Shown here in pieces: positions 27,887-49,972 of a stretch of DNA of 64,000 nucleotides. The notes beneath the pieces were generated by a model. The model worked only from the letters and a program-made list of their open reading frames with translations, did no database searches and had not been told where the DNA came from. This DNA is from Thalia democratica (lineage: Eukaryota): positions 76,136,001 through 76,200,000 of the forward strand of contig OZ241830.1 of the NCBI GenBank assembly GCA_965202585.1. Direction: 5' to 3'. Every line of letters begins with the position of its first letter. Within the stretch, counting starts at the first letter, position 1. The translations under genes and the position numbers were made by a program.

Positions 27887-30800
27887 CAATGAGTTACCAA
27901 GTAAAAAAGATGAAATAAATAATGTAAGCGAAAATGAACTAGACAAACCGGTTGAAAGCAAAACTTCAAATGACCAGAAGAAAAAAAATAAAAAGGATAA
28001 TAAAAAGGTAACTACTTAAAAGTTTTCTGTTCAATAAGAACTTAATTGTGACAGAGAATCTCATTATTTTCATTCATCAACTGATTGAAGGATTTTTTTA
28101 TAAACAAGCTCTTGAATAAAAAAATTTTTTTAAGTAATTTTCGTTTGCTGTTTTTAAAAGCTGTTTACATAATTTATTATCTTCAAAAAAAAATTAGACT
28201 TAGTCTGTTTTATAAACTTTTTATTACATACCTTTTGTTTCTAAATAAAATAAGCTTGTTGTGTATATATTTAATACAAACTAAAACTTGTATATTTTGT
28301 TGTGTGTAAAGCAATTTTCTTGGGTAACAAACAAATAGTCACAGATAGATTTATTCAGCAAATCTGATTTTTAGATTGCTTTGAAATTACCTTCAGCTTT
28401 TAGTTGTTTGTTTCTTTTTTTAATTTATATCTTTTTTAATGGGTATTTTTTTTTTATCTTTTAGTTTCTATCAAAACCACAGGTAGGGCCAACAAAGAAG
28501 TTTTCGGCAATTCTGACAAGATTTCTGCTACTCCTTCACTTGGCAGTAGCAATATGGAGGGTTTCACTTAATTACGACAAATTTTATTTGTTTTTCGTTT
28601 CTATCGGTGCTATAATGCTGCTTGTTGAAATGATCGTCACATTAGCTGTAAGGGGAGGAAATGAGATGAAATGGTAAAGTATACTTAAAAAAAAGTTTTA
28701 TTACTTCTTAATGTTTTTATTTATTTAGCAACGTAGTTTTTAATCAAGTTAAACTTTTTATTTAAACTAAAAAAACTAATAAAATTAAAATTAGCTATTG
28801 AAAAGGTAAATGTAGAATATTTTTTCTACTAGAGTCTAGCTAAACTCTTAACTACTATACTGGTGTGATAAATCAAAAAAAAAAATGAAGTTTAAAAAAA
28901 AGTTTATTTTTTTTTAATTTTGTTGAACAAATCTTTTTTTACTAAAAATCTTAAACTAATAAAAATAAGAATAAATTATTAAAAGGTTCAGTCCGAGTGT
29001 ATTCTTTTACCTGTTGAGTATTATTCCTTGTTTATGGTTTCTTGAAATAGCTGAACTACAGCATATTGTAGATAACTCTCCACAATGCAATCACACCTTT
29101 CTTATGAACATTTCTAATACTACTGTAAGTTTGTTTACAAAATTTAAAATAAAAACAATTTGCTCTTTTATAAAAGAACAAGAAAATTGAAAATAAAATT
29201 ATAAAAGTTGCTTTAAATAATTCTTTTACTTACGAATTAAAGAGTTCGTTTATGTACAAAGCTAAATTTTAATTTAAATAGCATCTTATAATAAAACTAT
29301 TCAAAAATATTTTAAGTTTTCGACATTTATAAAAAAACTTATAACAACAGGAAAACAGCCATACTACACCTGAACACCATAAGAGTTCTGTTTTATCAGA
29401 CATACATTCAAGAAGTATACTTTCTGTTGATAACAATGTTGGTGGGTATGCTAAAAAAGCTGACAGCAAATTAAACGACACTACTAACTTAGTTACTTCT
29501 GAACCTACTGGAGTTAATACATCAGAAAAAGTAAAAGATAAAACGTTTGGTAAGTGTAATATTAAACCTGTTTTATGTTTGATAAACTATTTGTTATTCA
29601 AAACAAAGTGTTTTCAAAAGAAACTAGTATTAATGGTTAAATAAAATTATGAAGAAAGTTATAAAAATTAAGTTCAGATTATTTACTCGTAACGTTTAGC
29701 AAAAATGTGTTTATATATATAAAAATTTATAGTTTTTATAAAAGCAATAACTATATCAAAAACTGTCAGCATTATCAATATAAAATTTATGATTTTTTTT
29801 GTGACTAAATATAAGACACTTGATGTATAACAACAACTTTAACAACAAACTAACAACAGTTGAGCGTATGGAAAGCACTTTTGAAGACACTGTTCAAGTT
29901 TTGAAACAAACAAAAGACGAAATGGTCAAGCAAGTTAAAAACTTCGTGAGTGAGTTTTAGTATTAGTTTGTATATTTTTTTCGTTATACTAATATGCTAA
30001 AAGTATGAAGTAAATCTTGTCTATTCTGAATAAAAAGAATATTTATTTTTTTATAACCTAACTTTTTTGAAATACCTTGAAACACGCGCTTGTTGATGTT
30101 AAATCCTATACTAAGCAAAATTTATTTAAATTTAAACATTGTTTTTGTGCTAAAACTCATTACAACTAAAAGTATAAATAAAAAGTATTTTAAAACAACA
30201 ACATTTAATTAGATTAGTATCAAGAACTTTAAAGGTTCTTGTGATCTAAAAAAACATCAGTGTGTTTTTAGTCGTTAGTATTCTTCGTGAAACAGTGAAA
30301 AAAACGCTTAAGGTCACGATAAAATAAAACATTAAAACCTGTTTAACTATTTACTAAGTACAAACCGTCTTATAAGTAAATTTGCTCAGTTGTATCGATT
30401 AATTTTCTTAAAAAGATAGCAAAGAAATATTTAATTGTAGCACAAACAATATATTGTTATTTTATTAAAGTTATTAAGTATGAACAGTCATTTTACTAAC
30501 ATTTATTAAGTTAACTCATTTATAGTAGTTTTTATTTGAAATATATAACATAATATACACTTTATTTAAAACAATAACTATTGTTAAATTTCTTCATTTG
30601 TTATAGTTTTTTTTAATAAATAACATAATATACACTTGTTTAAAACAACAACTGTTCTTTTTTATTTTAATTTTTGTATGACCAGTTATCTTAACATTAA
30701 TCATTAAAATAGAATGTATTTTTTTTTAGTTATCTTCAATCAACCGATTGGGAACGCGAAACTGGAAGTTAGCAATCCACCAGACCCTGATATTCGTTTT

Positions 30801-33690
30801 AGTGTTGTGCAGATGGTTATTCCCCATCGATGAAATTACCAGGGATGAGCTGAGCCAATTACTGCTGGTTTTCATTGGGATTGGAGGAGATATACTGGAA
30901 TTTGTTACTGGTAATTGTTTTTTAAAACTTGAAATTACAAACAAGTATTTTATCTATTTTTATAGATCTCGCGTTTATATTTGTACAAGCGTGAGATCAA
31001 GAAGAAAGATAAAATATTTGCAGATGCGCTCCTTATTTCATGCTTAGTTGTATTTAATTTAATGCTGAAGCTTAATTTCAAACTTGTTACGTTTAAAAAG
31101 TTTGTAAAGTATGTTATTATAAATTACGAAAATAATTTTAAACGCTACTCATAAAATTAAATATAGATTTATAAATGTCGAATTATCTTTAAACTTTTGA
31201 AGTAGTATTTTAAATGTTCTACTTTTTATACTTTACAAACAATCCTTGTTAGCAATACTGATAGTTTATTTTAATTGTATTGTTTACTTTTTGTAAGCGT
31301 TTAAAACTACAAAAATTTTACAGAAACTTTAGAAGAAGACAAAATTCACGATTGTAATTTTTTTCTGGTTTACTTTCTCTATGTGGTTTGGACAGTCAGC
31401 CTCTTTCAAGTGAGTTATTACACGAAATAGTTAAAGTCTACTTATTCATTTAAACTGCTTTTATTTAAATCTTTGTGCAAATAAGTGCTTTTAGCTCTTA
31501 AGTTTTAACAGTTAAAATACTTTGTTTCAAATATACCATATGTTTTTCTCGGTTAAGTAAACAGTAAAAACTACAAACTATTTTTTTTAATTTTTACTTT
31601 ACCAGTTCACACTAGTGATGACGGCAAGCAAGTCACGCAAGACCCGCATAGGGTTCGGTGAAAGCGGAATGACCAAAATAAGCAGGGCGAACAATTGCTG
31701 TGCCAGGTCAATATTCAACTCTGCCGAAGTGTGGGGTATCATTGTTACATTGTGTGTTCAGGTAAATTTACTAGGCTGAAAAAAAATAGTATGTAAAATA
31801 TATCTGTAAGTGTTGTTGGAAAACATAACAAAGCTTCTACATACTTTCGTAGTAAGCTATATCGACTGCTTGACTCGTTTCAGGTATAATCAAATAAGTA
31901 TAACTTACATCAATAAAAATAACAAAATATTCAATTTGTCTAAAGTGTGGCGATCATTGTCACTTTGTGTGTTCAGGTAAATATATAATAAGTATGAAAC
32001 TCTATTAGTTAACTTTACTTAATATACTTTCTAAAATAACATTCAACTTGGCTGAAATAAAGGGCGTTGTTGTCATTTTATGTGTTCAGGTAAGTTAACT
32101 TAGTTTATTAAAACATTTTTGTTTGTAAAATGTATACTCTAAGTGTTGTTGGAAAATACTACTAAGCTTCTACATAATTTCGTAGTAAGCTATATCGACT
32201 GCTTAACTCGTTTAGCTAAATAAATCTTAAGCTCAATTTTATTTTAAAGTTATAAAAATTTGGATTACTTAAAATAAAAAGAAGATAAAATATTTCTTAT
32301 TTCTTAAAAAAGAAAAAAATAGCTTAGTTTGATTCATTATCTTACTAGTTTTATAATATAAAATTAAACAGTTTAAAAAACAACTTCCGTAAAAATATAA
32401 AGACACTAGATAAACCTTTGAAACCTGTGTTCGTAATAACTTCAACTTTGTTTATTAGTTATGACATAATAACACCTTGGTAATTATTGCAATAATTAAA
32501 TTATTTTTACAGGACATACCATTCTTTTCGTTCCGATTGTACATGATACTGGTTTACCAGGAAGTACAACAAATGATGATATTCTTCACTGGAAAGAACG
32601 CACTTGTTATTGTGCTGCAGTTGTATAGACTTGTTGTCCTGAAAGTTAGTGTTAAAACTTTTAATTTACGAAATAACTATGGTTCGGTCATTTTTTAGTT
32701 TTTAGTTTAAATTTTGTTTTAAGTAGTAAACAGTTATTTTAATGTTTAATTTAGTCTACATAAGCTGTTGGTGTTCACATTAGATTTTGTTTACAATGAC
32801 ATAAAAAAGGATGACAATTTTGCGAAACTTAAATAAATTCAAGTGATTTGTTTTGTTTCTTAATTGCTGTCAATAATAATTAGTGATAAGCCAATTTTAT
32901 TTTTAATAGCTGGACAAGAAAACTACAGACAGAAAGAAAGTATCAAATTATGATAACGAACTGATTCCATTGAGAGGGGTCCTTCAAGATCTTACAATGC
33001 AAAATAAAATTTCTTTGAACAGTATAAACGACAAAATCATATCCAGTTAGTTTATATTATTGCTTGTGATAATGCTAAACTATTTTGATGCTTAAAATAA
33101 AAAATTAAAGAAACTCAAATGACCTAACTTGTAGTGATAAAAACAGTTTGAACGATAGATTTATGTCTAACACGATTATGAAAGTTATAAATACCTTGTT
33201 GTAGAAAATTGTTTAGAAAAATGTTGAAACTTAATCATTTAGCATTTCAAGTAGTATAAACGATAAATTTATAAAACTAATATTTGTGACAATCCTAATA
33301 ATTTTACTGCTGCAAATTGTTCAAAAGAATGTGGTAATCTTTAAATTACTTGACTTTTGTGCGCAGGTTAAATTTAATTCTTTGAACAGTTTCAACGATA
33401 AATCTACACCTGGAAAATTCGTAAAACTAATGTTAATAACAATGTTAATCTAGTTAGGGGCTTAATACAGTACTTATAATAAAAAAAATATCAAAAAGTT
33501 AACTTAATATGGTTTATATAAGTACAGTGCATAGCTTCTCATTAGTTTATCAGAGAAAAATAAAAAATCAAATTTTCATACAGATGCAACTTTCAAAACT
33601 AAAAGCAGCGGTGACGTCATAATAAAAATGACGCTGGACGGAAAACTTATGGGGAAAAAAGGAAAACTTTTCGATGATAAACTGGAATAA
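27887..33690 (+). CDS. TMEM26: TMEM26-like multi-pass membrane protein (start codon unresolved)
   Basis: Phase-consistent GT-AG exons: 27887-28007, 28465-28673, 28986-29124, 29351-29549, 29860-29945, 30730-30910, 31324-31409, 31606-31761, 32513-32644, 32910-33045, 33584-33690. Motifs AILTRFLLLLH..VAIWRV, KWFSPSVFFYLLSIIPCLWFLE, ITRDELSQLLLVFIGIGGDILEFVTETL and QDIPFFSFRL..FFTGKNALVIVLQLYRL match TMEM26 from memory. The last exon choice is less certain. Confidence 0.85.
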
Positions 33691-35280: not shown

Positions 35281-38200
35281 ATGTTCAAACTTGCTTATTT
35301 GTTTTTGTTAATTTCGTTGAACTTGGGGATTTCATCAGCTTTTGGTCCAAGAAAGTTGTTTACTTTAGAAGTAGATGCAAACCTAGTCTCAGTCAATGTT
35401 AGTTTTTTATTTACAAAAAAAAAACTCGTTTACTTACTACTCTTAGTTTATTTAATTCTATAACATTTTATATTTAAAATAACAAGTAAAGAAAATTGTT
35501 AGTTCTTATGCATAAAACAACAGAAGTATTTACAACTTTTTTAAATGCATAAAAATATAGTGCATTTAGTTATTTAAGTTTTCTAAGTTTTTGTTTCACT
35601 TCTGAGATTTTATTATGAGCAATTCCTACATTTTATTTTTATTTTATTTTACAGTTATGAATGTTTAAAAAAGTTTAAGGTTAAAAAAACACAAGTTAGT
35701 ACTAAATAGTAAACAACCATTGAAAATAAAGATAATATAAAAACTAGTTTTTTCGTACAAAACTGCTTTATTATTTCAACTATTAAAAAGTAAATTGCTT
35801 TAAGTTTTAACAAATATCATTTTCTAATCTTTAAAAAATTTTATTTATTTGATTAAAAAATTAACTTGATTACAATAAAAATTGAATAATGTTTCCTCAC
35901 CTTTAAATTTTAGAAAATTATCCAAAAAAATTACTTAAAATAACTGATAAAATTTATTTCATTATATAAAAGTACATTTTTAGTTATTGTGAATAATTTT
36001 CAAAAGTCTAGTTTTATTAACTACTTAGTAGTTAAATGTTTAAAGCCTAAATAATATGTTTTACTAGCTTGAACTTGAAATTAAAATAAATTTTGGGTTA
36101 GTAAAGTTCAATTTGTTTTTAAATTGTAGATGAAAAATGAACATGTTTAAGACAGGCTTAAATTCTAACACAAATCTAATACTAGGCAGTTTGTAAACTG
36201 TACAAAAAACTATTCTTTTAATATATCATCTTAATAAATATGTTAGATTCTATTTTTAAGTATTATAAAAATATTATTTCCATAAACAAAAATAGTGGTT
36301 TTAACTCGTATTAAATTACACTTAAGCCATTACAAAGTTGATGTTTATGAAAATGAATTTTAAATACTAAAACACATTATATGTAAACTTAATACATTTA
36401 ATTAAAATTTTCTTAAAAAACATATTCAAACCTGTTGCTAAATGATAAAATATGATTTAAGAATACTGTATTCAAAAGGCTTTTAGAATTTGCAATAAAA
36501 AGTTCCAAATAACTTGTGTTAAATAGAAAAACGAGTACTTATAGTTAAAAGAAGTCTTATCAAAAAAATAAAACTTATGATTATTAAAACAAATAAAATT
36601 TGATCAAATAGATTTCAAAGTTTTACAAATTCTTAATTTTCAAATATTTCACCAGTTTATGTAAGTGTAACTACCAAGCGTTATGTTATCACACTCTTGT
36701 GTTAATGCGATAAAATCCGTAGTTTAATACTTCTGGTATTTCCGTTATCTTCGGCTACGATGTATTAGTCTCTATCGTTGATTAAAAAAATTTTTTTAAA
36801 CACTCTTTATCAATAGTTTTACTGTGTTTTACTTAACTTTTATAATAACTTGGGTTTATACAAACCAAAAAGCTTATTACACGTCTATACATTGTAATAA
36901 ACAAGCTTAAGGTAAAACTAACAGGCTCAAGGCTTTAAGGTTTATTTCTCGTGAAAAGTAAGTTGTTTAAAAATTTAATAATCTCATGCTTTGCTCACTA
37001 AAAAAGTTTTACCGAAGGAGTTCCAAAAAAAAAACCAAAACCTTTTTGGTGCTCAATTTAGTTTACCTTTGTAAGTACTTTGATTTTAATTTAAGCAACC
37101 AACTACACTTTATAATTTCTGAAAACTATTTATAAAACTTACATTGAAAACTTTATAGGTTACCCTACAGCTGTTTGACTGTTTGTCAACTATGAGTTTT
37201 AAGATAAAATGTTCCGTATACACTACAACTTCGCTTAATTCTTCAGAAAAACATGCTTCATGTTATTATTATTTTTAGTAATGATATTAATTCCATTATA
37301 AATATTGTATTACCGTTACTGTCAAAATCCCAAAACTACCGTAACAGGTGGTCGAAGGAACGAGGTTGGTTTTGTCGGGTACGTACTACATCGGGGTTAT
37401 TGAAAATATTCAGTGGAAGTATACCCAGCCAAACAGGTAACGTATATGACTTGCAAACTTCAAGTTTTTTTAGATTATGACTTGATAAAAGTAATAAATA
37501 AACTAAATTCGAATAGAATGAAGATTGATGTGATCAATACGGATATACCCGACCCGAGATACGTTGATAAGCTTCCTTGTTAGTTGTATTAAATGTTATA
37601 AATTATATGGATAACTGTGAACAACTACAATTAAACTTTATTGTTTAAATTCTAACAAACATTTACATACTTTCAAAGTTTACCAAAAAAACGTCTAATA
37701 AGTATAATTGATTAATTAATACAAACAATTGTACTTTTTCAAACTAAAACGTTTTTTTATTTTAGCTCCGAAATTAACGGTTGTGTGTAAAAAAAAAGTA
37801 AAAGTTTTACTTATACTGTAAGTTAAAAGTCTAAAAATTTCAATAATTTTCATAAACATTTCACAGACGGCACACTTAAAACAAAAGGGTTGTTGTATGC
37901 AGTATCTTCGTGGGCCACAAATGACACTGACGGACATATTGCCATTATGCGAACAGCTAATGGCTATGGAGGTTTATTTTTATGATGCTAAACATCTGTT
38001 ATTGTAAAGAATTCAAACATTTTTAAGTAGCTCTCTTAGCGCATAAACTGTTTAATGATGTCAAACTTCTACAAAAAAAAGAACCTATTAACTGTAATTT
38101 TTTCGATGTGATAATTTAACATTAATATAGTGAAGCTTAAGCTATGCAAAAAATTGTTCTTGAAATTATCAATAGTCATTAAGTTTACCTACAAGTAGTT

Positions 38201-41200
38201 TTTAACTACTGTAAAATAGTAATGTATCAAGCAAAAAGTTTTTTTTTTGAAATATGTTTTACAATATATTAAAACTTGATATACCATATTTAATATTGAT
38301 TTAACCTGTTGAAAAAAAAACAACTGAAAAATATTTGTATAGGATCACTTTTAAAAGAAAAAAATCATCATGTATACTACATGCTTGTTTTACAGAATAC
38401 AGGAATGTGGATGTTGGATCTGGCTGGAGTTACGATCGGGCAATTTGGGTTGACATGAACAGAGATGGTTTGAAAGATTGCCTCACTGCTAGGTACAGGG
38501 ATGGAGGTAATGTCTAAAACTCTAAAGTTTTAGTTTTATTATTTTTTTATTAAAAAACAAATCGTTTGACTGCTTTACTACGAAAATACTACACTTTTTT
38601 TTTGATTGCAATAACTAGTTTCTTATCAGATTTGTTAGAGAAACAATTTTAAAGCTTAAATTGTTGACATTACAAGGTTACTTTATCTAGTCTGAGTAAA
38701 AACTTCAGTACTATGTTGAATTTTGTTTTCAGTCGGTCAGCTGCTATTTTTCACGCAACCAAACGGTCAGGGGGTGTGGAACCAAAAGATAATAAATGAG
38801 GGAGAAGCGGACGGCAACTTCAAAACTATACAGCATTACAAGAGGAACTACATAGTTGTGGCTGCCAATCAGTTCTCGTCATTAAGTGTGTTTTGGACCA
38901 CTGGTGAGATGTTTTATATTTTTAATGAGATATTATACACCAGTAGTGCAAAGTTGGTACAGTTTGTACTTGAAAGTTTAACTGGTGCTAATTGAACTCA
39001 TTAAAAAACCTTGACCATTAGTTAGTGCCTTGTTTTCTTAACTTGAGTTTTCGTACATATAGCACATTGTAGTGGTTAAAAATAGTCATGATGAGTTTAA
39101 AAGGTTCAAATTGCTTAGAATACATAAAAGGTTTTTAGGATTTGTTTTTCATAGCCCGTCTCTGATGAACAATTATTAAAAAAAATATTCTGAGTTGTTA
39201 TTAATAAGCAGTATTTTCAAATTTTAAGGATTGTAAAAAAACATAAGTTTATGATAAAATTTGGTAATAAAATTATATAAATTGTATTTCAGATCCAAAA
39301 GGCAAATGGACAGATGAGAAGAAATTAAGGAAGAATGTAGTTGATAATTACGGAAAATATTACGATGTACAGCATGTTGATTTGAACAATGATAAAAGAA
39401 AAGACATTTTGACAACTACTATCAAGTTAGCTTCACATGTTTATATATGACAAAAAATATTCAGTAAAACTATTAAGAAAGCTTTACAATCTACAATAAA
39501 AATAAAAGAAAAGACATGATCACTACAAATATTAAGTAGAATTAAAAGTATATAACGCTTTTTAAAACTTTACATTGTTAAATTAACTTACTATTTTTTT
39601 TGTAGCAAAAACTATTTTTCTCTAATTTTTGAAATAACTAACTATTGACAAGTTTTTTGAGTGTAAAAAGCCTATAATTAAATATAACGTTAACTTAAAG
39701 CTCATTATTTCAACTGTTTGTAAATGTACATAGACAGAACTCAAATGTTAGTTTGCATGTATATCTTTTGCACAACGTCAATAAAAATAATTTTAAAGTT
39801 TTACAACTAAAGAAATATTCAAACCACTTTCAGGGTATCGGACGCTAGGGGTCAGGTTTTGGGTTACGACCTTCCTGACGACCTTAGGTACGGAAAGTGG
39901 AAAAGGAAGGTTTTGGCAACAGGGTTTGACAGCGCTTACTCGCCAGGAAAGGCGATCGCATATTTTCCCAACAAGTTTAGACAAAAGTGAGATTGTTATA
40001 ATCGTGTAATTAATTGTAGTATATTAACTGTCTAGTTATTTCATAAATTTTTGTGAGGTTGCAAAACAAGATAAAGCATAATTTCCTTACAAGTTAAAAA
40101 GTGAAATTTTACTAGTACTTTTATAACATAATAACAAAAATTATGTTGAGCAGTGTTTTTATCAAAGTTATTTATTAATTTTTTAGCTTTTTAATCTTAA
40201 GCTAATAAATAGCCACTTAAAATTAGCTGTAGCTATCACTAGGAAATTTGCACAAAAGTCTCTTTCATACAGCAAAAATACTCGACTTTTTATAATAAGG
40301 CATACTTTAAATTTTTTAATTAACTATATTGGTTTGTAAACTTTCATTTATCAGTATTGCAACACTTACCATTAAATAATCTAAATAAAACGAGTTCGTA
40401 CTTGAGTTGGTAAAACATAACCATCTAACAAAAGCTCGGTTGCAATTTTTTAAAACTCAGAAAATGCTTGGTTTTACTAAAAACCTTTGTTGATGAATTA
40501 CTTTGGTTTGTAAACTTTTATTTATTCTTTCAGAAGCGAACGACCCTCTATATTCCTGACGGGCGGTTCTTCGGGTAAACTCTTCATTCTTTCCCCTAAA
40601 CCGAAAACCAAAGGGTGGACTTACGTTAAAACATATGTGAGCTTATTTTATATATTGTTAGTGTAAAAACCGCGAGATATCACAATTAAATATTTTGTGC
40701 TACTAGCAAGTAAAACAAAAACAAGTTAGCTAACATTTATGTACATTAATCGAATTAAATCTTAAAAAAAAGAAACTACTTTTTGTTACTACGTAACCTT
40801 CTAACCTTAATTCTAAAAAATCAGTTCAAACAATTTTCAACACTGTGCTTATTTTATATTAAGCTTAAAAACTGCAAGACATCACAATTCAATATTTTGT
40901 GCTACTAGCAAGTAAAAAAAAAACAAGTTTATATACATTGCTCGAACTAAATCTTTGCAAGAAATATATGAAACTACTTTCTCTTAGTAAATAAGCTTCT
41001 AACCTCCATTAAAAATGATGTTTGTGCGATAATTTAAAGCCAAAAACTCTTCAACACTGTGCGCTTTTTACTGCAGTATTTTCAATTTTATGAAAAAAAT
41101 TTAAACTTACAACTTGATAAATAATTTGAAACTAAAAAAAAAAATAACAATCCAGATGCAAGTAGCAACAGTGGGAGCTGTTGGTATCCCCTGGATCGGT

Positions 41201-44200
41201 GACCTGAATGGGGATTCGTACCCGGAAATATTCGTGCCCCAGGGAAACAAGCTGCACATATACGCTTATGGTATCTGTTATTTGATTAATAAAATAATTG
41301 TACTTGAATAATTTTAACTTGGGACAATGAAAAACACTTTGTAAACATATTTTATAAATACACTTACAATTTATATATTTTTTTTTCAATCAGTATACTT
41401 TTAGTCAATAAACTTTTTTCAAAGCTCTGATTTTCTACAAATTGATCAAAAAACTGTAAGTTATAGATCGACAGAAGTTTTGAAACTTTATCGTACATAA
41501 GTAAAGCAATAATTATTTTATTCCAACAAATTAAAAAACTTTTAAAATTAACGTATAATTTCCACTCAGGTAACTAACTTAAAAGAGTTTATTTTTATAC
41601 ATTTTATTTAAGATAAACTCAAAAATAAATTAATTTTTCAAAGTTTAAACTATTTGGCAAGTTTGTGGTTTTAAAATATCAAATTTAATAATATACTTAC
41701 AAGTTTTTAAAATAAAGAATATTTACTTCTAGTACAACCGGTTTGTAATCGTATCAGTTCAGACCGCAATATACTTAACAAACTCATTAGTGATTTCAAC
41801 TGTGATAAAAAATACTCATAACGTTTAGCTGTGTTTTTTAGTAGTGTAACTAGTAGAATTTGATTTTTTGATTATATTTTTTCAAACAGTAGCATAATAC
41901 GACGTTTATAATACTCAATTATGCGTTTGTTAATGTTCAATATATGTGTAGTGTGCAAAAAAAAAGTATAAAGCTTGTTTTAGGTAAAAATACGTTTTAT
42001 TAAGGTTGAAACACCAAATAATGCTTCAAACTTGTTTCTACCAGTTGAAGACAAAAATAATTTTTAATCTGTAAATAAACTACAAACTTGTTTAGTATGA
42101 AATTTAATTGTCTTGCATAAGTGTTCTATACTTTCAAATTAATCGAACTTTTAAACATAAAACATTCAATCGAATATTTTGTAATAATCAATAAAAGTCT
42201 ATTATGTCAAACTGGAAATACTTAACTGTTTATTGTCTTGCTTAAGTCTCATCTTTGTTTTTAAACTCAATTCTTCAACATAAAAGATTTACATTCAGCA
42301 AAATTAAAGTTTAAACTATGAAAAATTCATTTTTTTATTATATAAAGTGTTTACCTTTTTTGTTGGGCAACAACTTTAACATACTTTTATATTTCAAACT
42401 CAAAATCTGCAGCTTGCTTATCTTAGTAACTGCTCATTGTAAAAGTTCTTTTTATCACACAAATTTCATTTTACTTAATTCAAGACTAATATTCAACCAA
42501 ATTGAAACAAAATATTAAAATAATACATCTTTTGAACGGATTACGCATATCTTCTGCTTAAAATTAAAGAATCTATTTTTCGTAAATGTTCTTTTTGTCG
42601 CCTTAGTCCCATTAATTTATGGTATTAGAAATTAATAAAGGTAATTTTATAAAAACAAATACTAAACTGATTTTTTCCAAACAGATTACGTAACATCGGC
42701 GGCGGACCCGCCCGCGTCAGCATTGGTCGATGACGATTCAGCGAAACCCGTTAAAAATAAACCAATCAAAAACCGACCTCCATACTACAGACCATCCATT
42801 AGTAGCGGGCCTGTTTTTCAGTGAGTTGTTTTTGATTAATAATATTTTAAACTATAGTTACCTCATATTTACAATACTCTTTATAGTTATAAAACATTTC
42901 AAATATGTAAACTTTCAATCTTTAGTTATTATTTGTTTAAAGTGTGCATAGATGTATTTTAAAAACCATTTGAAAGCATAGAAAACACATTTACTAAAAT
43001 ATTTAGAGGCGGAGAAAAGAAAAAGCCAGCAGAAACGGCTGATAAAAAAGAAACAGCAACTAAAAAGCCTGGTGTGGATAAAAAGGAAGAAACCAAAAAG
43101 GAAGAGGTTAAAAAAGAAGAAGTGAAAACAGAAGTTCTGAACAAAATACAGAATCCAGTCCAATCTAACAGCTATCAGGCAAACCCGAACATACCAGTTA
43201 CTTTGTTCAATGGAAAACAAACTGTAGTTGCTAAGCCGTACAGTAGGATGCAAAACGGACAAATTGTTTATCAGGTTCTTAGTTAATATTTTCGTTATGT
43301 TTGTTAAATTATATAATATAACAAATGTTATTACTAGCTAAGTTTTTTAAATCTGAACATTAACTGCTTAACTGTTCCTTAAAACCTTAATTTTTATCAT
43401 TAAATATTCAAGATAAAAAAGATTTCTATTATCTAAACTAAATGTTATATACTAGACTTTCAATAGCTAAAAAAAATTTATTCGTTATTCTGCATTAACA
43501 AAACATTAAAAGTTTGATTATAAGGAGATGGCTATTTACAAGTCAAACTTATTTCCTCAATGTTACTAATCACTTAATACTTCTCCAACTAAAAGTTTTA
43601 AATTTTGTAACAGGTAGATACAGCTAGTAGTGGTGCTTCTAATCAGCAGCCATTTATAGTGGTCAACCAGCAAACAGCCAACCCGCAACCAATCGTACCA
43701 ACCCAAGCACCAACAACCAATAAAACTAACAACCAATTACAACCTGATTCTCAGTTTCAAGTTATTCCCCAGCAGCCGACCTATGTTCAAGTCAGTTGAT
43801 CGTATCATTGGAGAAACCCATAAGTTCAAAAAATTACAAATTTGTTATTTACCAGTGTCAATCAAAAACTTTAACAAGTAGTGACTTTTACAAAACCAAA
43901 TACTTTGTAATGATTTTTTTGTTAATTCTTTTATTTTTAATACTAAGTTCACACATAGCAAAGTATTGATTTGAAAAGAAAGAAAACAGGTAAGCCGTAA
44001 TCCGGGGTCAAAAAACAACTCCAATTAACTATTGCTTCAGACAAAGCTTTTTTGTATTGATTTGAAACTTTTAAAATCGTCTTATAATTACAGATATCAT
44101 ATTTAAATTCTAATCAAACATGTACAACCTAAGACATAATTTGTTTTTCTTCTTTCCAGCCACAACCAGTGTACATGCCGAACCCGTTCTTGAACCCTTT

Positions 44201-47200
44201 CAACCCATTCGGACAGATGATGCAACCCCAAATAGTCCCTCAACCGTTTTACGTGGTCCCGCCTTCGACCAGCCTGGTCACACCTGTAACTACCAAGTTT
44301 GTTTTAATTACTTATATACAATGAAATATTTTAGCGGTTTTTATATGATAGTTGTGCGTAGTTTAGTTCAGTTCGATCTTTTAACTTTTTTACTATTGTT
44401 ACATTTTTGCGTTTTAAACCGATTTTAATATGTTTCATGTAAATAAAACTGTTTTTATAATTGTTAATAATTATACTAAATCACATATATAATCATATTT
44501 TAGAGAACAGCCAAAGATTTTACTCTTGTAAATAGAGCTTAAATTTTTAAAGCAAATAATACTAATTTTACTGTTCTAATTACTTAAGTGTTTTATTGGT
44601 GCATTCATTTAGAATTTAAAACCTAGTTTTCCTGTATTTTTCCAGCTTGGAAGTTCATTACAAAACATTGATAAAAAATTCAAAGTTTAAACTCAACTAA
44701 AACATTTTACTAAACTTTAGATAGCTATTATCAAGTTTTACATTCAAATAACGTGAAAAGTTAATGGTACCGAATAAAAGTATATTAAGTGTCTTGCATA
44801 TATAAATTGTGTACTCTGTTTAGAAAAACTAATTATTATTACTACTTGATAGATAGCACGTAGTATTTATAAATTCAAGAAGTTCGCCATTGTCTGTTAT
44901 TTGCAATTTTTAATTGTCTTTTGATCTTACTGTGTACCTATTGTCTTCTACCACACATATTTCGGTGTGTTGGTCAGCAGTGTGCATTTTTTGGAGCCTT
45001 GTGACAATAGAACTAAAAAAACTTTTGAATAACAGGAGCACTACTAAAGCAACTGAATCAACACCGATCACAACTACAGAAGAGAGAACGACTAACTTTC
45101 TTGATGCAATTAATTTAGGTAAGACTGATGTTGCTTATTTATCTGGACTTAATAACCAATCGTAAGTTCTTGAAACTAAGTAAGCATTAAAATTGTAGTT
45201 TTTACTTTAGAAAATGCACAAAAGCTTTGAAACATTTCAAGCAATTAAGCTCTAGCTTTTATAACCGAGACAAAGTATCTTATAATATAAGTTAAAAAAA
45301 GTATACCTGAAAATACACGAAAAAATTTAGTAGATAAAGTTAATTTGAGATTAGTATTTGAAAACCTAAAAAAGAGTTGTCAAGGCAATCATAATAAAAA
45401 GATACAAGTGTAAAAAACACTTAAGATATAGCATTTTTGTTCGTTTATTATTGTACCTTATTAAAGTATCATATCGTTTAATAGATCAAAACCTAACACT
45501 ACAGCGGACCGCAAATCCATCAAAAAAGGCCTGAATACCTAAAACTATTAAATAATAACTTGATAGTTGTCTTTAACATCTTACATATTTTATTATCAAT
45601 GTAGTTATGAAAATCTACAGCGGACTACAGAGCTATCAAGAAAGGACCGGAGTACCTGAAACTGACCAACGCGTTGTACGAGACTCACGACATAGCGGTT
45701 GTCAGTTGTCAGGCTATGGACAGGAAACTGTGCAGTTTGAAGGAGCTGCAGGTAAAAAAGTTCTACTATATCTAAAACATTTATATATAGAGAAATAATT
45801 AATTTAAGATAAATAAACTTTTGCCTGGAACATTTGTTTCTGCATCGAAACGCTTTCATCAGCTAAGTGTTTTGTTTGATGTTACACAAAAATAAATTTC
45901 GCCCTTCCTAAGCAGGCACAAAATAAATATAATGATAGATGTATTTAAACATTTTTATACAATTTTTTCTCAGTACGCGCTTACTGTGGAGCACGTGATA
46001 CCCGACACCGTGTGGGGATGGTACGAAGTTGGGGGGAGGGCGGCCAAGCTGGAGAGTTGTGTGCCAGGTTAGCCAAGTAGAATTATAATTATCAATATTG
46101 CGTCGGGTAATATGATTTTGAATGTTTTAATAAGTAAAAGTTTATAAAAAGTAAAGTTTAGTGAAACGGATGAAGGTTTTGAGGATTGAAATAAAGTATA
46201 TTTGTGTTAAACTAATAATATCTTTGGCTTAAAAATAAAATAAGTTAAAAGTAGCAGTTTTTGGAGAAAAGTATGATTTGCTAAAAAGTATAAAAAGTAA
46301 ATTTTTCTGAATTTGATAAAGACTTTCTGATTTAAAAGTAATTACAAAACTTCATTTTCAATAGCTTTAACTCAAGTTAAGCAACTTTGCTTAATTAACT
46401 ATAAAATATTGTTCTATCATTTTTTATTATTATTATATTGTTTATTGTGCAATGTTGGACTCAGGCATCAAAACCTGAGCCACTTAAACAGGACACACAA
46501 AAAGAGAAAAAGAAAATAAACTTATATTCAAAACTTTAAGATAAATTATACATATATATATATACAAACATAATTTAAATGGAAACACAAAGTTAAACAC
46601 AATATGATAAACAAATGAACTAAATTGAAAATTCAGTTCAAAAAATTCAAATTTATAATTTGCTTAGTACACACAGTAAAGAAGTTTGTCTAAAATCATG
46701 GCTTATAAAACAATATTCATAAATACAAAATATATAAGTAAACTAATAGTTTGTAGGGGGGAGGCGTAGGGAAACGAATATTTTTCCTTTTGTTACAGTG
46801 GAAAATTAGTTAATTTTACTGGTATTTATCGTATTTAAGTCAAATCTTTTTAGCTTTAAACGAAATTGTTCTACCCTCTCACAAGATACTATATCCTGAG
46901 GTAGTCTGTTCCACATAGCTTTTGCTCTGTGAAAAAATGCGCCTTGCCACTGACTGTTTTGAAAATCATGTTTACATTTTATTTTCAAATTATTTCCTCT
47001 TAGTTGATATTTATTTTGGGAAAAATTAAAAAACTGGTCAAAAAAACTTTTATATTTGCCATTGATAATTTTGTAAAGAATTAATAAATCAAATTCCCAT
47101 CTTCTATATTCCAGTGATTTCAATCCAAATTTAATCATTCTATCATTATATGACGTGTAAGATATGTTGCAACGATTACAAATATGACGGGTAAAACTCC

Positions 47201-49972
47201 TTTGCACAGATTCAATTTTGTTAATATCCTTTTTTAAATGGGGTGACCAAATTTGGGTACTAAACTCAAGTTTAGGGCGAACGTATGTTTTAAATAGTTT
47301 TGTCAGAATTGAAGCAGAATTAGTTTTAAAACTTTTCAATATTTGATAACATGTAGTTTTTGCAATCTTATATAAATAGTTGATATGTTCATTCCATTTC
47401 AAATCTTTGGAAATATAAATTCCTAAATCTTTAAAAACTTTAATTTCTGGTAACTTGATGTTATTGATTAAGAGGTCAGTTGGAGAAGATTCTTTTTTGT
47501 TAATGGTTAGAATTTTACATTTGCTAGGATTTAAGTTTAGTTTTCTTGTTTTTAACCATATGTAAATATTATCTAAAGATAGTTGTAATGAAGTATTTGA
47601 CTGACTAAAGATTTTGGCATCATCTGCAAATAAGCTTAACTCACTTTTAATATCAATGTTTGAACAAATATCATTAATATAAATTAAAAAGAGAAGGGGA
47701 CCAACTACACCACCTTGTGGTACTCCACTGTAGATTGTTAAAGAGTCAGAAAGCGTATTATTGATGAGTACTCTTTGTGATCTATTATTTAAAAAGTTAT
47801 CAAACCAGATAGATTTCAAACTAGATACTTAGCTAAATCATAGATACTTTTATTTTAAAGATTTTTTTTTTGTGTTTAGTCTAATATATACTTATTGTTT
47901 CCAAACACAACAAAAAGTATTTTTTATTTCATCAGGAAATGTTAAATTTGAGGGAATGGAATGTTTCAACGGGGACATAATCCACACTCCGATCAGAAAG
48001 AACCACGCTTTCAAATCTTTCTGTTGCGCCACAGTGAATGATGCTATCCTTACTAAAGATAAATACATGTACGTTATTATACAGTGTTTATTGTTTTATT
48101 TCAAGTAGTTGACAACCTTTGAAAATTGTTATTTTATATTTAGCTTATAGTACAAACTCGTTTGTTTCAGACTTTAAATATACACAAGTCTAAATAAGTG
48201 CGTAAAATATTGTTAATTGACAACACAATGAACTCTATAAGATATAAATTACTGCATTATAAACAAAATAAAAATAATTTTTTTTATTTACAAAGTGTTT
48301 TATCAAGCAGTTTTTACAGATAACAATATTTTCAATTTTTTTGGTAAAATATGTGTATTGCAAAGTTTTAATTTGACAACTAGTTTTATCAAGAAACTTT
48401 TTATTTAAGCTATTTTGCACAGGACACACGACGAAGCTTACGTGGGATGCAGGAAACACGATCATCATTTGTGCACTTATACGGATATGTTTGACGTGTA
48501 CACACATGTTAGTATTTTAGTAACTATTTATGTACAGACAAAGTAAATTATTGCTTGTTGTTCAGTATAAATTTACACAAAATTTCGAAAAAAAAAGTAC
48601 GTAAGTAAGCATGTAAAAAATGTTTTGGAGTGTAGTAACTTTAAACAATTGCAGTTGTTGCAAATTAATAAAACTATATTAAGCACTCCATTCTAACAAA
48701 ACTTTCTTTGCATAATTTTTAAATAAAAATCTGACTTAATTTTCTTTTTAATGTCTTCTTATGACTTTTTAAAATCCTTCATAAAAGATTTTTGCAGTTT
48801 TAATGTTCATTAGTTTTTTTCAATAAATTTCCGTTTTTATTGAATCAAACATCATGGTGTCTTAAACAGTAAATATACTAGGACATGACGCTTATAAGAT
48901 TTTAGTAATTCAAACAAAAATTAATTGGCTTTTCCGGTTTTATATTTTCAAACGAGACTTGTCTCATAAAGTTAAGTTTATGATAGTATAATCATCATTT
49001 GATCGAATTTTTTAATAAACCGGTAAGACTTCTCACTTAATTTTTTCAAAGGCTAAAGCCTACTAAAGTAGGTTTTTTTTAAAAGGTATTTGTCACACTA
49101 CTCATGTTATATTTTTCTCCACAGTCAACGTACAAGGACATGACTTGGGGATGGTTCCACGAGAAGAATAAGATGATAAGGATGTCGAAACAGTGCAATG
49201 AGAATGACGAGCCGTGGCAGGGGTACAAGTGCCATGAGGGACTGTTCGAAACTAGTCCTGTCAGGTAAACAAAATTGTAGAAATATTAATAAACTTTACA
49301 AATATTATATAAGTATGATGAGTAACTTTTTGAAACAAGTCCTGTGAGGTAAATATATTTATATATAAATTAATAAAATTTATAGTATAAGGATACAAAT
49401 GTCATCAAAATAAGGATACAAATTTTTTGAAACTATTATTGTCAGGTTTGAAAAATCTATATTTAACAGTAACTAGTCCTGTAAGATGTATTTAAAAATT
49501 GATAATAAAGTTAATAAAATGTTTTCGTGTAAGAGCCATGAGGGACTGTTTGTAATTATCTCTGTGAAGCAAATTTGATACTTTTATTTTTAAATAGTAC
49601 TTTTTACAGTTAATGTACCATACACTAGTTATACAACACTTATAAGCTGTTGAATATTTAAAACATCAACTGTAAAAAATATTTTTATAAGAACTCATGA
49701 TAGAACAATGAAAAATTATTTCAAACTTAACAGTTCTAATTAAAATTTTTAACCAAATATCATCTAAACAACCTACCAGTAGAAAAAATCTAAGTAATTT
49801 TTTTCTTAATAGTAGGCAAAATTTTAACATTATTTTTACTAATTTGTTTTTTACTTACAGATCTAGAGTGGAGGAAAGTGCCTACTGCTGCCCAAACAAT
49901 TCAACAAAAATAAACATTTCATTGTTCACACTAATTTCAATAATGATATTAACTACTAGCTGGTCTCTGTAA
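35281..49972 (+). CDS. 884-aa cell-surface protein: signal peptide, FG-GAP/VCBS beta-propeller, low-complexity stalk, 2 Link-like modules, GPI-type tail
   Basis: 21 exons, all GT-AG and phase-consistent, 2655 nt with no internal stop: 35281-35397, 37348-37436, 37517-37578, 37867-37971, 38396-38506, 38733-38903, 39293-39425, 39834-39986, 40534-40636, 41156-41270, 42685-42820, 43007-43274, 43614-43790, 44160-44296, 45036-45118, 45621-45751, 45974-46067, 47936-48068, 48423-48507, 49125-49264, 49861-49972. Ca-loop motifs are VDMNRDGLKD, VDLNNDKRKD and GDLNGDSYPE. The individual exons are well supported, but their joining into a single gene is inferred. Confidence 0.68.
40670..41075 (+). repeat. 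Intronic tandem duplication (~200 bp x2)
   Basis: atcacaatt.aatattttgtgctactagcaagtaaaa occurs at ~40678 and ~40880, and the downstream similarity continues. Confidence 0.75.
46420..47825 (-). mobile_element. 5'-truncated CR1-type non-LTR retrotransposon (RT C-terminal half, 3'UTR, AAT tail)
   Basis: Uninterrupted 337-aa ORF with GVPQGGVVGPLLFLIYIND and LFADD RT motifs and a CR1-like C-terminus (LRGNNLKI, MWNRLP). It has a 3' stem-loop ctcagg/cctgag at ~46460-46480 and an (AAT)n tail at ~46420-46440. It lies antisense within intron 17 of the host gene. Confidence 0.92.

Follow-up and report, generated by a model that had tools for sequence, protein, structure and literature searches.

An intron-rich gene of Thalia democratica encodes a predicted FG-GAP propeller on a stalk above a tandem Link-like pair, with a probable GPI anchor

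A 64,000-nucleotide stretch of the genome of the tunicate Thalia democratica (assembly GCA_965202585.1, contig OZ241830.1, positions 76,136,001 to 76,200,000), hereafter called the window and numbered from its first letter, carries on its forward strand, between positions 35281 and 49972, a single intact 21-exon gene that is under selective constraint. The joint explanation that best accounts for the evidence, to which we assign a probability of roughly 0.8, is that this one constrained gene encodes a propeller, a stalk, a pair of Link-like modules and a hydrophobic tail, in this order, and that the product would function as a surface receptor held by a glycosylphosphatidylinositol (GPI) anchor.

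An independent dynamic-programming splice chain across this region gave 21 exons and 20 GT-AG introns, with a coding sequence of 2655 nucleotides (nt), corresponding to 884 codons and the stop codon. In this chain, exons were scored by codon log-odds and splice sites by generic donor and acceptor weights, and only GT-AG introns were allowed. The start and stop were fixed to those proposed in an earlier interpretation of the letters alone (the sequence-only reading), and the stretches used to train the codon table were picked by eye. The splice joins of the best chain were identical to those proposed earlier, and thus the claim of 20 consecutive GT-AG introns that join in frame to give 884 amino acids (aa) was reproduced exactly. 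The window is AT-rich (~25% G+C), and the G+C content of the coding sequence is 44%, whereas that of the 12 kb of introns is 24%. A bacterial-style listing of open reading frames (ORFs) in the region returned short fragments only, as expected from the earlier statement that the gene is mostly invisible to such a listing. A pseudogene is rejected by the intact reading frame and by the low substitution ratios described below, and a paralogue array is rejected by tblastn, which detected no second copy of the gene within the window. As a separate observation, the contrast between 44% and 24% means that simple G+C islands mark exons well, which could guide gene finding elsewhere in this genome.

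The exon structure was compared with two intronless marine metatranscriptome contigs of the Joint Genome Institute (JGI), L001 (2884 nt) and L002 (1861 nt), which are derived from close relatives and encode the proteins P0015 and P0017, respectively. In the blastn alignments with the window, one segment was obtained per exon, in order, with 20 of the 21 exons covered by L001 (spanning exons 1–21) and exons 8–21 covered by L002, and nearly all of the alignment ends fell on, or a few bases from, the predicted splice sites. The joins 41270>42685 and 44296>45036, which had been doubted in the sequence-only reading, were both crossed by L001 and L002. In addition, the exon 10/11 junction, H[IV][YF][AS]YDY...PP, was read through in all seven proteins that cover it (the six full-length orthologues described below and the partial P0017), and the intron positions of exons 6–10 recur in three ascidian genomic contigs of metagenomic origin. 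These results indicate that the earlier claim of one gene, rather than of transcripts that end after exon 10, holds in the close relatives, and from them we infer the same for T. democratica.

One irregularity was seen in L002, in which an extra A is present at position 124, in a run of A exactly at the exon 8/9 junction. The extra base shifts the frame, so that the first residue of P0017 is the Met that corresponds to residue 349. This base is probably a homopolymer error of assembly or sequencing.

Orthologues with the same domain order, which the sequence-only reading had proposed to seek, were found from exon 6. When 1.84 billion representative proteins were searched by phmmer with nothing but this 56-aa exon, P0009 (1001 aa), the Styela clava 'uncharacterized protein LOC120333741', was matched at the equivalent residues 163–217. 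Searches seeded with P0009 then returned P0012 (Clavelina lepadiformis, LOC143446302), P0013 (Ciona intestinalis, LOC100176022) and five proteins encoded on transcript-sized contigs. The same domain order was present in six full-length proteins (P0009, P0012, P0013, P0011, P0014, and P0015), and P0016 and P0017 are partial proteins that cover the C-terminal part. P0015 has 884 aa, and its identity to the window protein is 84% overall and 97% in the propeller; P0017 (534 aa) is ~95% identical, as judged by eye, to residues 349–884. The nearest relatives among the matches listed are transcripts from planktonic samples, and the propeller shows about equal identity (51–53%) to those of Styela, Clavelina, and Ciona.

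In the comparison with L002, the ratio of nonsynonymous to synonymous substitution rates (dN/dS) was calculated for the segments with enough aligned codons, which gave 0.14 for the stalk, 0.03 and 0.05 for the modules, and 0.13 for the tail. For the propeller, which was compared with L001, the proportion of nonsynonymous differences (pN) was 0.02, and the synonymous sites were saturated. These values indicate that purifying selection acts along the whole gene. All 12 cysteines of the two modules are invariant among the orthologues.

Regarding the distribution of the family, no non-tunicate orthologue was present among the matches listed in word-indexed searches with the full protein, the propeller, and the full alignment (four to six matches each), and the family is provisionally regarded as restricted to tunicates. 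A metagenome scan with P0017 gave no matches, and a scan with the propeller alignment gave three ascidian genomic contigs only.

The features listed in the sequence-only reading, namely a signal peptide, three DxNxD loops, a stalk of ~270 aa, two Cys-rich repeats, and a terminal hydrophobic tail, were all found in the 884-aa product. The N terminus is hydrophobic (MFKLAYLFLLISLNLGISSA), and residues 1–20 were assigned to the signal peptide by inspection. The loops at aa 144 (DMNRDGLKD), aa 248 (DLNNDKRKD), and aa 364 (DLNGDSYPE) fit the pattern Dx[DN]xDxxx[DE], and each of them lies in a hairpin between consecutive strands of the AlphaFold2 model, the position that such loops also have in integrins. 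This model, which was calculated for residues 21–392 of P0015 from a six-sequence alignment, had a predicted local distance difference test score (pLDDT) of 78.8 and a predicted template modelling score (pTM) of 0.81, and contained 28 strands arranged as seven four-stranded blades. The Pfam family FG-GAP_3 was matched in six of the six full-length orthologues, at 33–46 bits compared with the cut-off of 26.9 (best E 6e-12), with FG-GAP matched more weakly; the positive proteins include P0015, with its 97% identical propeller. The window exons, when searched singly, gave weak FG-GAP matches (E 0.01–0.08), and the Cys-rich exons gave no Pfam match.

In structure searches with the propeller model, Foldseek against the PDB and the Swiss-Prot part of the AlphaFold DB returned CRTAC1, the KICSTOR propellers, TIP homologues, aldos-2-ulose dehydratase, and integrin alphaM, with CRTAC1 and TIP as the top AlphaFold DB Swiss-Prot matches. 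With VIA-align, the aldos-2-ulose dehydratase FG-GAP propeller scored Z 28.3 (342 of 372 residues), and integrin alpha scored Z 26–27. A search of the PDB with the propeller profile returned only integrin alpha-6, at a non-significant E of 0.34. These results support the FG-GAP assignment made in the sequence-only reading and indicate that the N-terminal domain is a seven-bladed FG-GAP propeller of the integrin-alpha type, in which the three loops, judged by their motifs, would bind calcium. A feature search of the ESM Atlas gave FG-GAP leads for the propeller, among which the nearest cluster by features, as distinct from alignment, was a family of 414-aa stand-alone FG-GAP propellers, mostly from molluscs. 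This family could represent an ancestral propeller-only form.

The seven-bladed FG-GAP/VCBS fold with DxNxD-type hairpin loops is shared with integrin alpha, CRTAC1, ITFG1/TIP, ITFG2, and aldos-2-ulose dehydratase, whereas the identity of these relatives to the tunicate propeller is only 10–13%. Integrin alpha has thigh and calf domains, a transmembrane helix, and the GFFKR motif, all of which are lacking in the tunicate protein, as is a motif for a beta-subunit partner. Likewise, the tunicate protein lacks the UnbV_ASPIC and EGF domains of CRTAC1 and the cupin/lectin domains of the fungal aldos-2-ulose dehydratase. Membership in the integrin alpha or CRTAC1/ITFG families is rejected, since the accessory domains that define them are absent from the sequence and from its Pfam matches.

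The stalk of the window protein is 268–276 aa long, depending on where its boundaries are placed (aa 388–655 in one delimitation), and is rich in Pro, Thr, Gln, and Lys. The stalks of the orthologues range from 190 to 439 residues, and they are always Pro-rich, with a composition that is otherwise lineage-specific (Gly-rich in Styela, 35% Pro in Ciona) and an alignment that is poor between lineages. This behaviour fits that of a spacer, and the stalk is a disordered, fast-evolving segment that is probably O-glycosylated.

The C-terminal part contains two modules of ~100 aa, each with the cysteine spacing C-x7-C-x34-C-x11-C-x19-CC. The two modules are 26% identical to each other over 93 aa (E 2e-14), with the six cysteines in register. 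The canonical Link module has four cysteines, which form two disulfides, with one Cys shortly before a conserved Gly-Trp. In contrast, the tunicate modules have six invariant cysteines, and no Cys occurs in the 19 residues before the WGW sequence. For the module pair, an AlphaFold2 model was calculated for residues 304–512 of P0017 from an eight-sequence alignment (pLDDT 86.5, pTM 0.76), and each module adopted a strand-helix-helix-strands arrangement. The top four Foldseek matches in the PDB were human aggrecan G1 tandem Link structures (E 1.5e-5 to 7e-5), and the TSG-6 Link module was matched with a template modelling (TM) score of 0.62–0.67, normalized by the target. In the AlphaFold DB clusters, Link-domain proteins came first (versican, aggrecan, and neurocan). 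The VIA-align Z scores were 10.1 for aggrecan, 10.0 for TSG-6 (86 of 93 residues), 9.7 for LYVE-1, and 8.2 for CD44, compared with 7.7 or less for C-type lectin domains. At the sequence level, the Pfam family Xlink was matched above its gathering score of 27 bits in Styela only (29.1 bits), and in every protein the match fell on module 2 alone. The ESM Atlas feature search with the module pair gave no usable lead, since its highest score (0.89) went to unrelated protist clusters and that of Xlink was 0.77. The Link-like character of the repeats, as claimed in the sequence-only reading, is borne out by the top structural matches and the Styela score, and the models support the view that the C-terminal modules are a divergent six-cysteine lineage of the Link fold, itself a compact version of the C-type lectin fold.

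Compared with known Link proteins, the tunicate protein resembles the G1 regions of aggrecan, versican, and neurocan and the HAPLN proteins in having two consecutive Link-fold modules. In these proteins, an Ig V-set domain precedes the Link pair, whereas Pfam detected no Ig domain in any of the orthologues, in which the low-complexity stalk occupies this position. The tunicate pair also differs in having six rather than four cysteines, in its sequence (13–17% identity), in its C-terminal, membrane-adjacent location, and in the relative orientation of the modules, which yields a TM score of 0.3 over the pair against an aggrecan-type tandem. Membership in the hyalectan/HAPLN group is rejected, since its defining accessory domains are absent. 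TSG-6 likewise has a minimal Link module of ~100 aa, with 16–18% identity to the tunicate modules and a different cysteine pattern. CD44 and LYVE-1 also combine a cell-surface Link fold (Z 8–9.7) with a stalk rich in Pro, Thr, and Ser. In those receptors, however, a single extended Link domain sits at the distal end, on a stalk that continues into a transmembrane helix and then a cytoplasmic tail. The tunicate protein reverses this order, with the Link pair at the membrane, the propeller on the stalk, and no cytoplasmic part.

The C terminus of the window protein, NNSTKINISLFTLISIMILTTSWSL, is followed directly by the stop codon. In GPI signals, the omega-site rules call for small residues upstream of a hydrophobic run. 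By inspection, the window tail is divided into NNS, TKINIS, and LFTLISIMILTTSWSL, a GPI-signal pattern that is found in all of the orthologues, which end 25–32 residues after the last Cys-Cys with small residues and a hydrophobic run and have no cytoplasmic part. The terminal hydrophobic tail noticed in the sequence-only reading is thus conserved throughout, without cytoplasmic residues. The hydrophobic run in the window protein is 16 residues long and is below the Kyte-Doolittle threshold of 1.6 for a transmembrane helix. The tail therefore has the form expected of a GPI attachment signal, and the protein is predicted from its sequence to be GPI-anchored. Since only ~2–10 residues separate the last cysteine from the candidate omega sites, the Link pair would be placed directly on the membrane.

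Several points weigh against this overall reading. The transcripts come from relatives and not from T. democratica itself, and the nearest contigs have 82–92% nucleotide identity to the window. Of the five AlphaFold2 models of the propeller, one was confident. WD40 and EPTP propellers scored nearly as high as the FG-GAP ones (Z 26 versus 28), so that the FG-GAP label rests on the Pfam matches and the loop motifs. The signal peptide and the GPI signal were both called by inspection. The modules match Link structures only modestly better than C-type lectin domains (Z 10 versus 7–8), and the Xlink scores fell below the cut-off in P0016 (25.2 bits), P0011 (24.9), Ciona (20.1), P0017 (19.7; the protein that is 95% identical to the window), Clavelina (18.5), and P0014 (15.8). 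Sequence searches of the PDB with exon 16 (phmmer), the module-pair profile, and module 2 of Styela gave no matches even at E 1–10. Moreover, the isoelectric point (pI) of the modules ranges from 4.4 to 9.0 across species, and their net charge varies as well; the two modules of the window protein are slightly acidic, and those of most species are neutral to acidic.

The points on the modules bear most directly on the alternative that survives best, which takes the C-terminal modules for generic C-type-lectin-like domains that make protein contacts, or for a rigid pedestal, and not for carbohydrate-binding Link modules, so that they resemble Link modules in fold only. We regard this as the less probable account of the modules, although one that deserves to be taken seriously. 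The sequence match to Xlink is marginal, many C-type lectin domains reach Z 7–7.7, near the Link scores, the charge varies, and the canonical Cys before Gly-Trp is missing and two extra Cys positions occur. However, Link modules rank at the top in three independent structure searches, the modules have the size of Link modules (~100 aa) and lack the long loop region of C-type lectins, and Xlink is the sole Pfam family matched here, above its cut-off in one orthologue. We thus favour the divergent Link lineage. The modules may have a glycan ligand, and a classical hyaluronan or heparin site is disfavoured because the basicity of the modules is not conserved.

The second alternative concerns the tail, whose hydrophobic run might be retained as a membrane anchor, without exchange for GPI, to give a type I protein that has virtually nothing on the cytoplasmic side. 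The call of the GPI signal by inspection leaves room for this, as does the longer run in some orthologues (20–22 residues in Styela, Clavelina, and P0011). We nevertheless consider it unlikely. The run of the window protein is short for a membrane helix at 16 residues, includes Thr and Ser, and falls below the Kyte-Doolittle threshold; no orthologue has basic stop-transfer residues or cytoplasmic sequence after the run; and Asn, Ser, Gly, Ala, and Asp occur 6–12 residues upstream of it in all orthologues, as in GPI signals. The GPI-anchored form is therefore the preferred reading of the tail.

The last alternative, which is very improbable, is that the locus makes two products, a secreted propeller-only protein that ends at 41309–41311 and a separate downstream stalk-Link gene or isoform; retention of the long intron 10 (1414 nt) would indeed lead to an in-frame stop at these positions 13 codons on, stand-alone FG-GAP propellers of ~400 aa occur in other invertebrates according to the lead from the ESM Atlas feature search, and the NCBI entries for the Ciona and Clavelina genes include isoforms, but in L001 and L002 exon 10 is followed directly by exon 11, with the join exactly at 41270/42685, the ...HIYAYDY... 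junction is conserved in all seven covering proteins, and exon 11 has neither its own start codon nor a signal peptide. Two separate genes are thus rejected for the close relatives, in which both joins are crossed, and by extension here. A minor isoform that retains intron 10 may exist beside the full-length form.

In the single-gene, GPI-anchored reading, the protein would enter the secretory pathway through a cleavable signal peptide, and its C-terminal tail would be exchanged for a GPI anchor, which would leave the Link pair at the outer surface of the membrane. The propeller, loaded with calcium, would be held out by the flexible, mucin-like tether of ~270 residues and would be able to capture a ligand there. 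The product would thus be a surface receptor for adhesion or recognition, in which a carbohydrate-type site lies close to the membrane and a protein-type site farther away, and the predicted architecture is most simply read as that of a two-site recognition or adhesion molecule. A more specific and distinctly speculative version, which we consider rather improbable, is that the protein is a lineage-specific tunicate receptor whose six-cysteine modules, a separate and so far uncounted Link branch, bind a polysaccharide other than hyaluronan and thereby tie the epidermal membrane to the coat, with a second ligand taken by the propeller. Candidates for the polysaccharide would be, for instance, sulfated matrix glycans or the cellulose-based tunic or house. 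If this were true, the view that tunicates have a single Xlink gene would need revision, as would the view of how glycan binding by Link modules evolved before the vertebrate hyalectans.

The coordinates of the exons, and of a retroelement within one of the introns, are collected in Table 1.

Table 1. Exons of the propeller-Link gene and a retroelement ORF in intron 17, in window coordinates
Feature	Position	Strand	Evidence
Exon 1: start codon, signal peptide aa 1–20 (35281–35340), mature start FGPRK...	35281..35397	+	Splice chain, L001; orthologues diverge before the FGP motif and are conserved after it
Exon 2: propeller blade 1	37348..37436	+	Splice chain; L001 segment 160–248 matches exactly
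Exon 3	37517..37578	+	Splice chain, L001, orthologue alignment
Exon 4	37867..37971	+	Splice chain, L001, orthologue alignment
Exon 5: Ca-loop 1, DMNRDGLKD (38452–38478)	38396..38506	+	Splice chain, L001; weak Pfam FG-GAP_3 match for the exon alone
Exon 6: invariant EGxADGNF motif; query that found the orthologues	38733..38903	+	Splice chain, L001, phmmer
Exon 7: Ca-loop 2, DLNNDKRKD (39379–39405)	39293..39425	+	Splice chain, L001, Pfam on single exon
Exon 8	39834..39986	+	Splice chain, L001, L002
Exon 9	40534..40636	+	Splice chain, L001, L002
Exon 10: last propeller blade, Ca-loop 3, DLNGDSYPE (41201–41227)	41156..41270	+	Splice chain, L001, L002, Pfam on single exon
Exon 11: conserved YDY...PP junction, start of stalk; join 41270>42685 in relatives' transcripts	42685..42820	+	L001, L002, orthologue alignment
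Exon 12: stalk, Lys/Glu/Thr-rich	43007..43274	+	Splice chain, L001, L002
Exon 13: stalk, Gln/Pro/Asn-rich	43614..43790	+	Splice chain, L001, L002
Exon 14: stalk, Pro/Gln-rich	44160..44296	+	Splice chain; L002 at 91% nucleotide identity; no L001 blastn segment
Exon 15: stalk, Thr-rich; join 44296>45036 in relatives' transcripts	45036..45118	+	L001, L002, orthologue alignment
Exon 16: Link-like module 1, two helices, Cys683/Cys691	45621..45751	+	Splice chain, module alignment, orthologues, AlphaFold2
Exon 17: module 1, WGW strand, Cys726	45974..46067	+	Splice chain, module alignment, orthologues
Reverse-transcriptase ORF (337 aa) of a non-LTR retroelement in intron 17, outside the protein	46806..47819	-	Pfam RVT_1, E 3.4e-17
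Exon 18: end of module 1 (Cys738, Cys758–759), start of module 2	47936..48068	+	Splice chain, module alignment, L001, L002
Exon 19: module 2 helices, Cys782/Cys790	48423..48507	+	Splice chain, module alignment, L001, L002
Exon 20: module 2, WGW strand, Cys825/Cys837	49125..49264	+	Splice chain, module alignment, L001, L002
Exon 21: last strand of module 2, Cys857–858, candidate omega Asn-Asn-Ser (from 49895), spacer TKINIS, 16-residue hydrophobic tail (49922–49969), stop	49861..49972	+	Splice chain, tail comparison, inspection

The fragment of the non-LTR retroelement makes up much of intron 17 (1868 nt). Upstream of the gene, at 28458–31782 on the same strand, G+C-rich islands contain open frames rich in hydrophobic residues, such as ...LLLLHLAVAIWRV... 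and ...LIFVLVLCRWLFP..., and are probably exons of a neighbouring gene that encodes a multi-pass membrane protein.

The sequence-only reading had also stated that no described protein was known to join the two domains. This holds for the literature searched, in which no paper was found on an FG-GAP and Xlink architecture or on the Ciona locus LOC100176022, but not for the public databases, which already contain the Styela, Clavelina, and Ciona orthologues as 'uncharacterized protein LOC...', two of them with precomputed Pfam assignments to PF13517 and PF00193. The architecture has thus been seen but not described, and it is not unique to T. democratica. The domain families are both well known, and what is new is their combination in the given order with a probable GPI anchor, together with the six-cysteine Link variant.

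A Ciona XLINK protein has been described as binding glycosaminoglycans other than hyaluronan (PMC12383584, citing Yoneda et al., 2010), and in the Pfam-derived table of that source, the only Ciona Xlink entry seen is A0A1W3JP67, a 297-aa protein with an F5/8 type C domain. A0A1W3JP67 is, like the protein described here, a tunicate Link protein, but it is the product of a different gene, with one canonical Xlink domain, a discoidin domain, and no propeller. It is probably the protein on which Yoneda et al. (2010) based their study of heparin binding by ascidian Xlink. The binding result for the Ciona Xlink protein is not transferable to the propeller-Link family, because the gene is a different one. 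The Ciona member of that family is not counted in Link censuses, because its 20.1 bits are below the Xlink cut-off of 27 bits, and Link-domain surveys would largely miss the family as a whole, because the threshold is passed only in Styela.

Overall, the locus shows that a 21-exon gene with introns of 24% G+C that is invisible to an ORF scan can be reconstructed and then validated by environmental transcript contigs. Link modules are central to vertebrate hyaluronan biology, and their origin before vertebrates is debated. Very few tunicate Link proteins are counted in Pfam-based surveys, and the family described here adds a second, strongly constrained Link-fold lineage that has been kept in tunicates. 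In the searches made, an architecture in which a mucin-like tether joins an integrin-type propeller to a tandem Link pair, with a probable GPI anchor, was met nowhere else. It provides a defined candidate for tunicate cell-matrix or cell-tunic recognition, with an orthologue (LOC100176022) in the laboratory model Ciona, in which expression and knock-down tests are routine.

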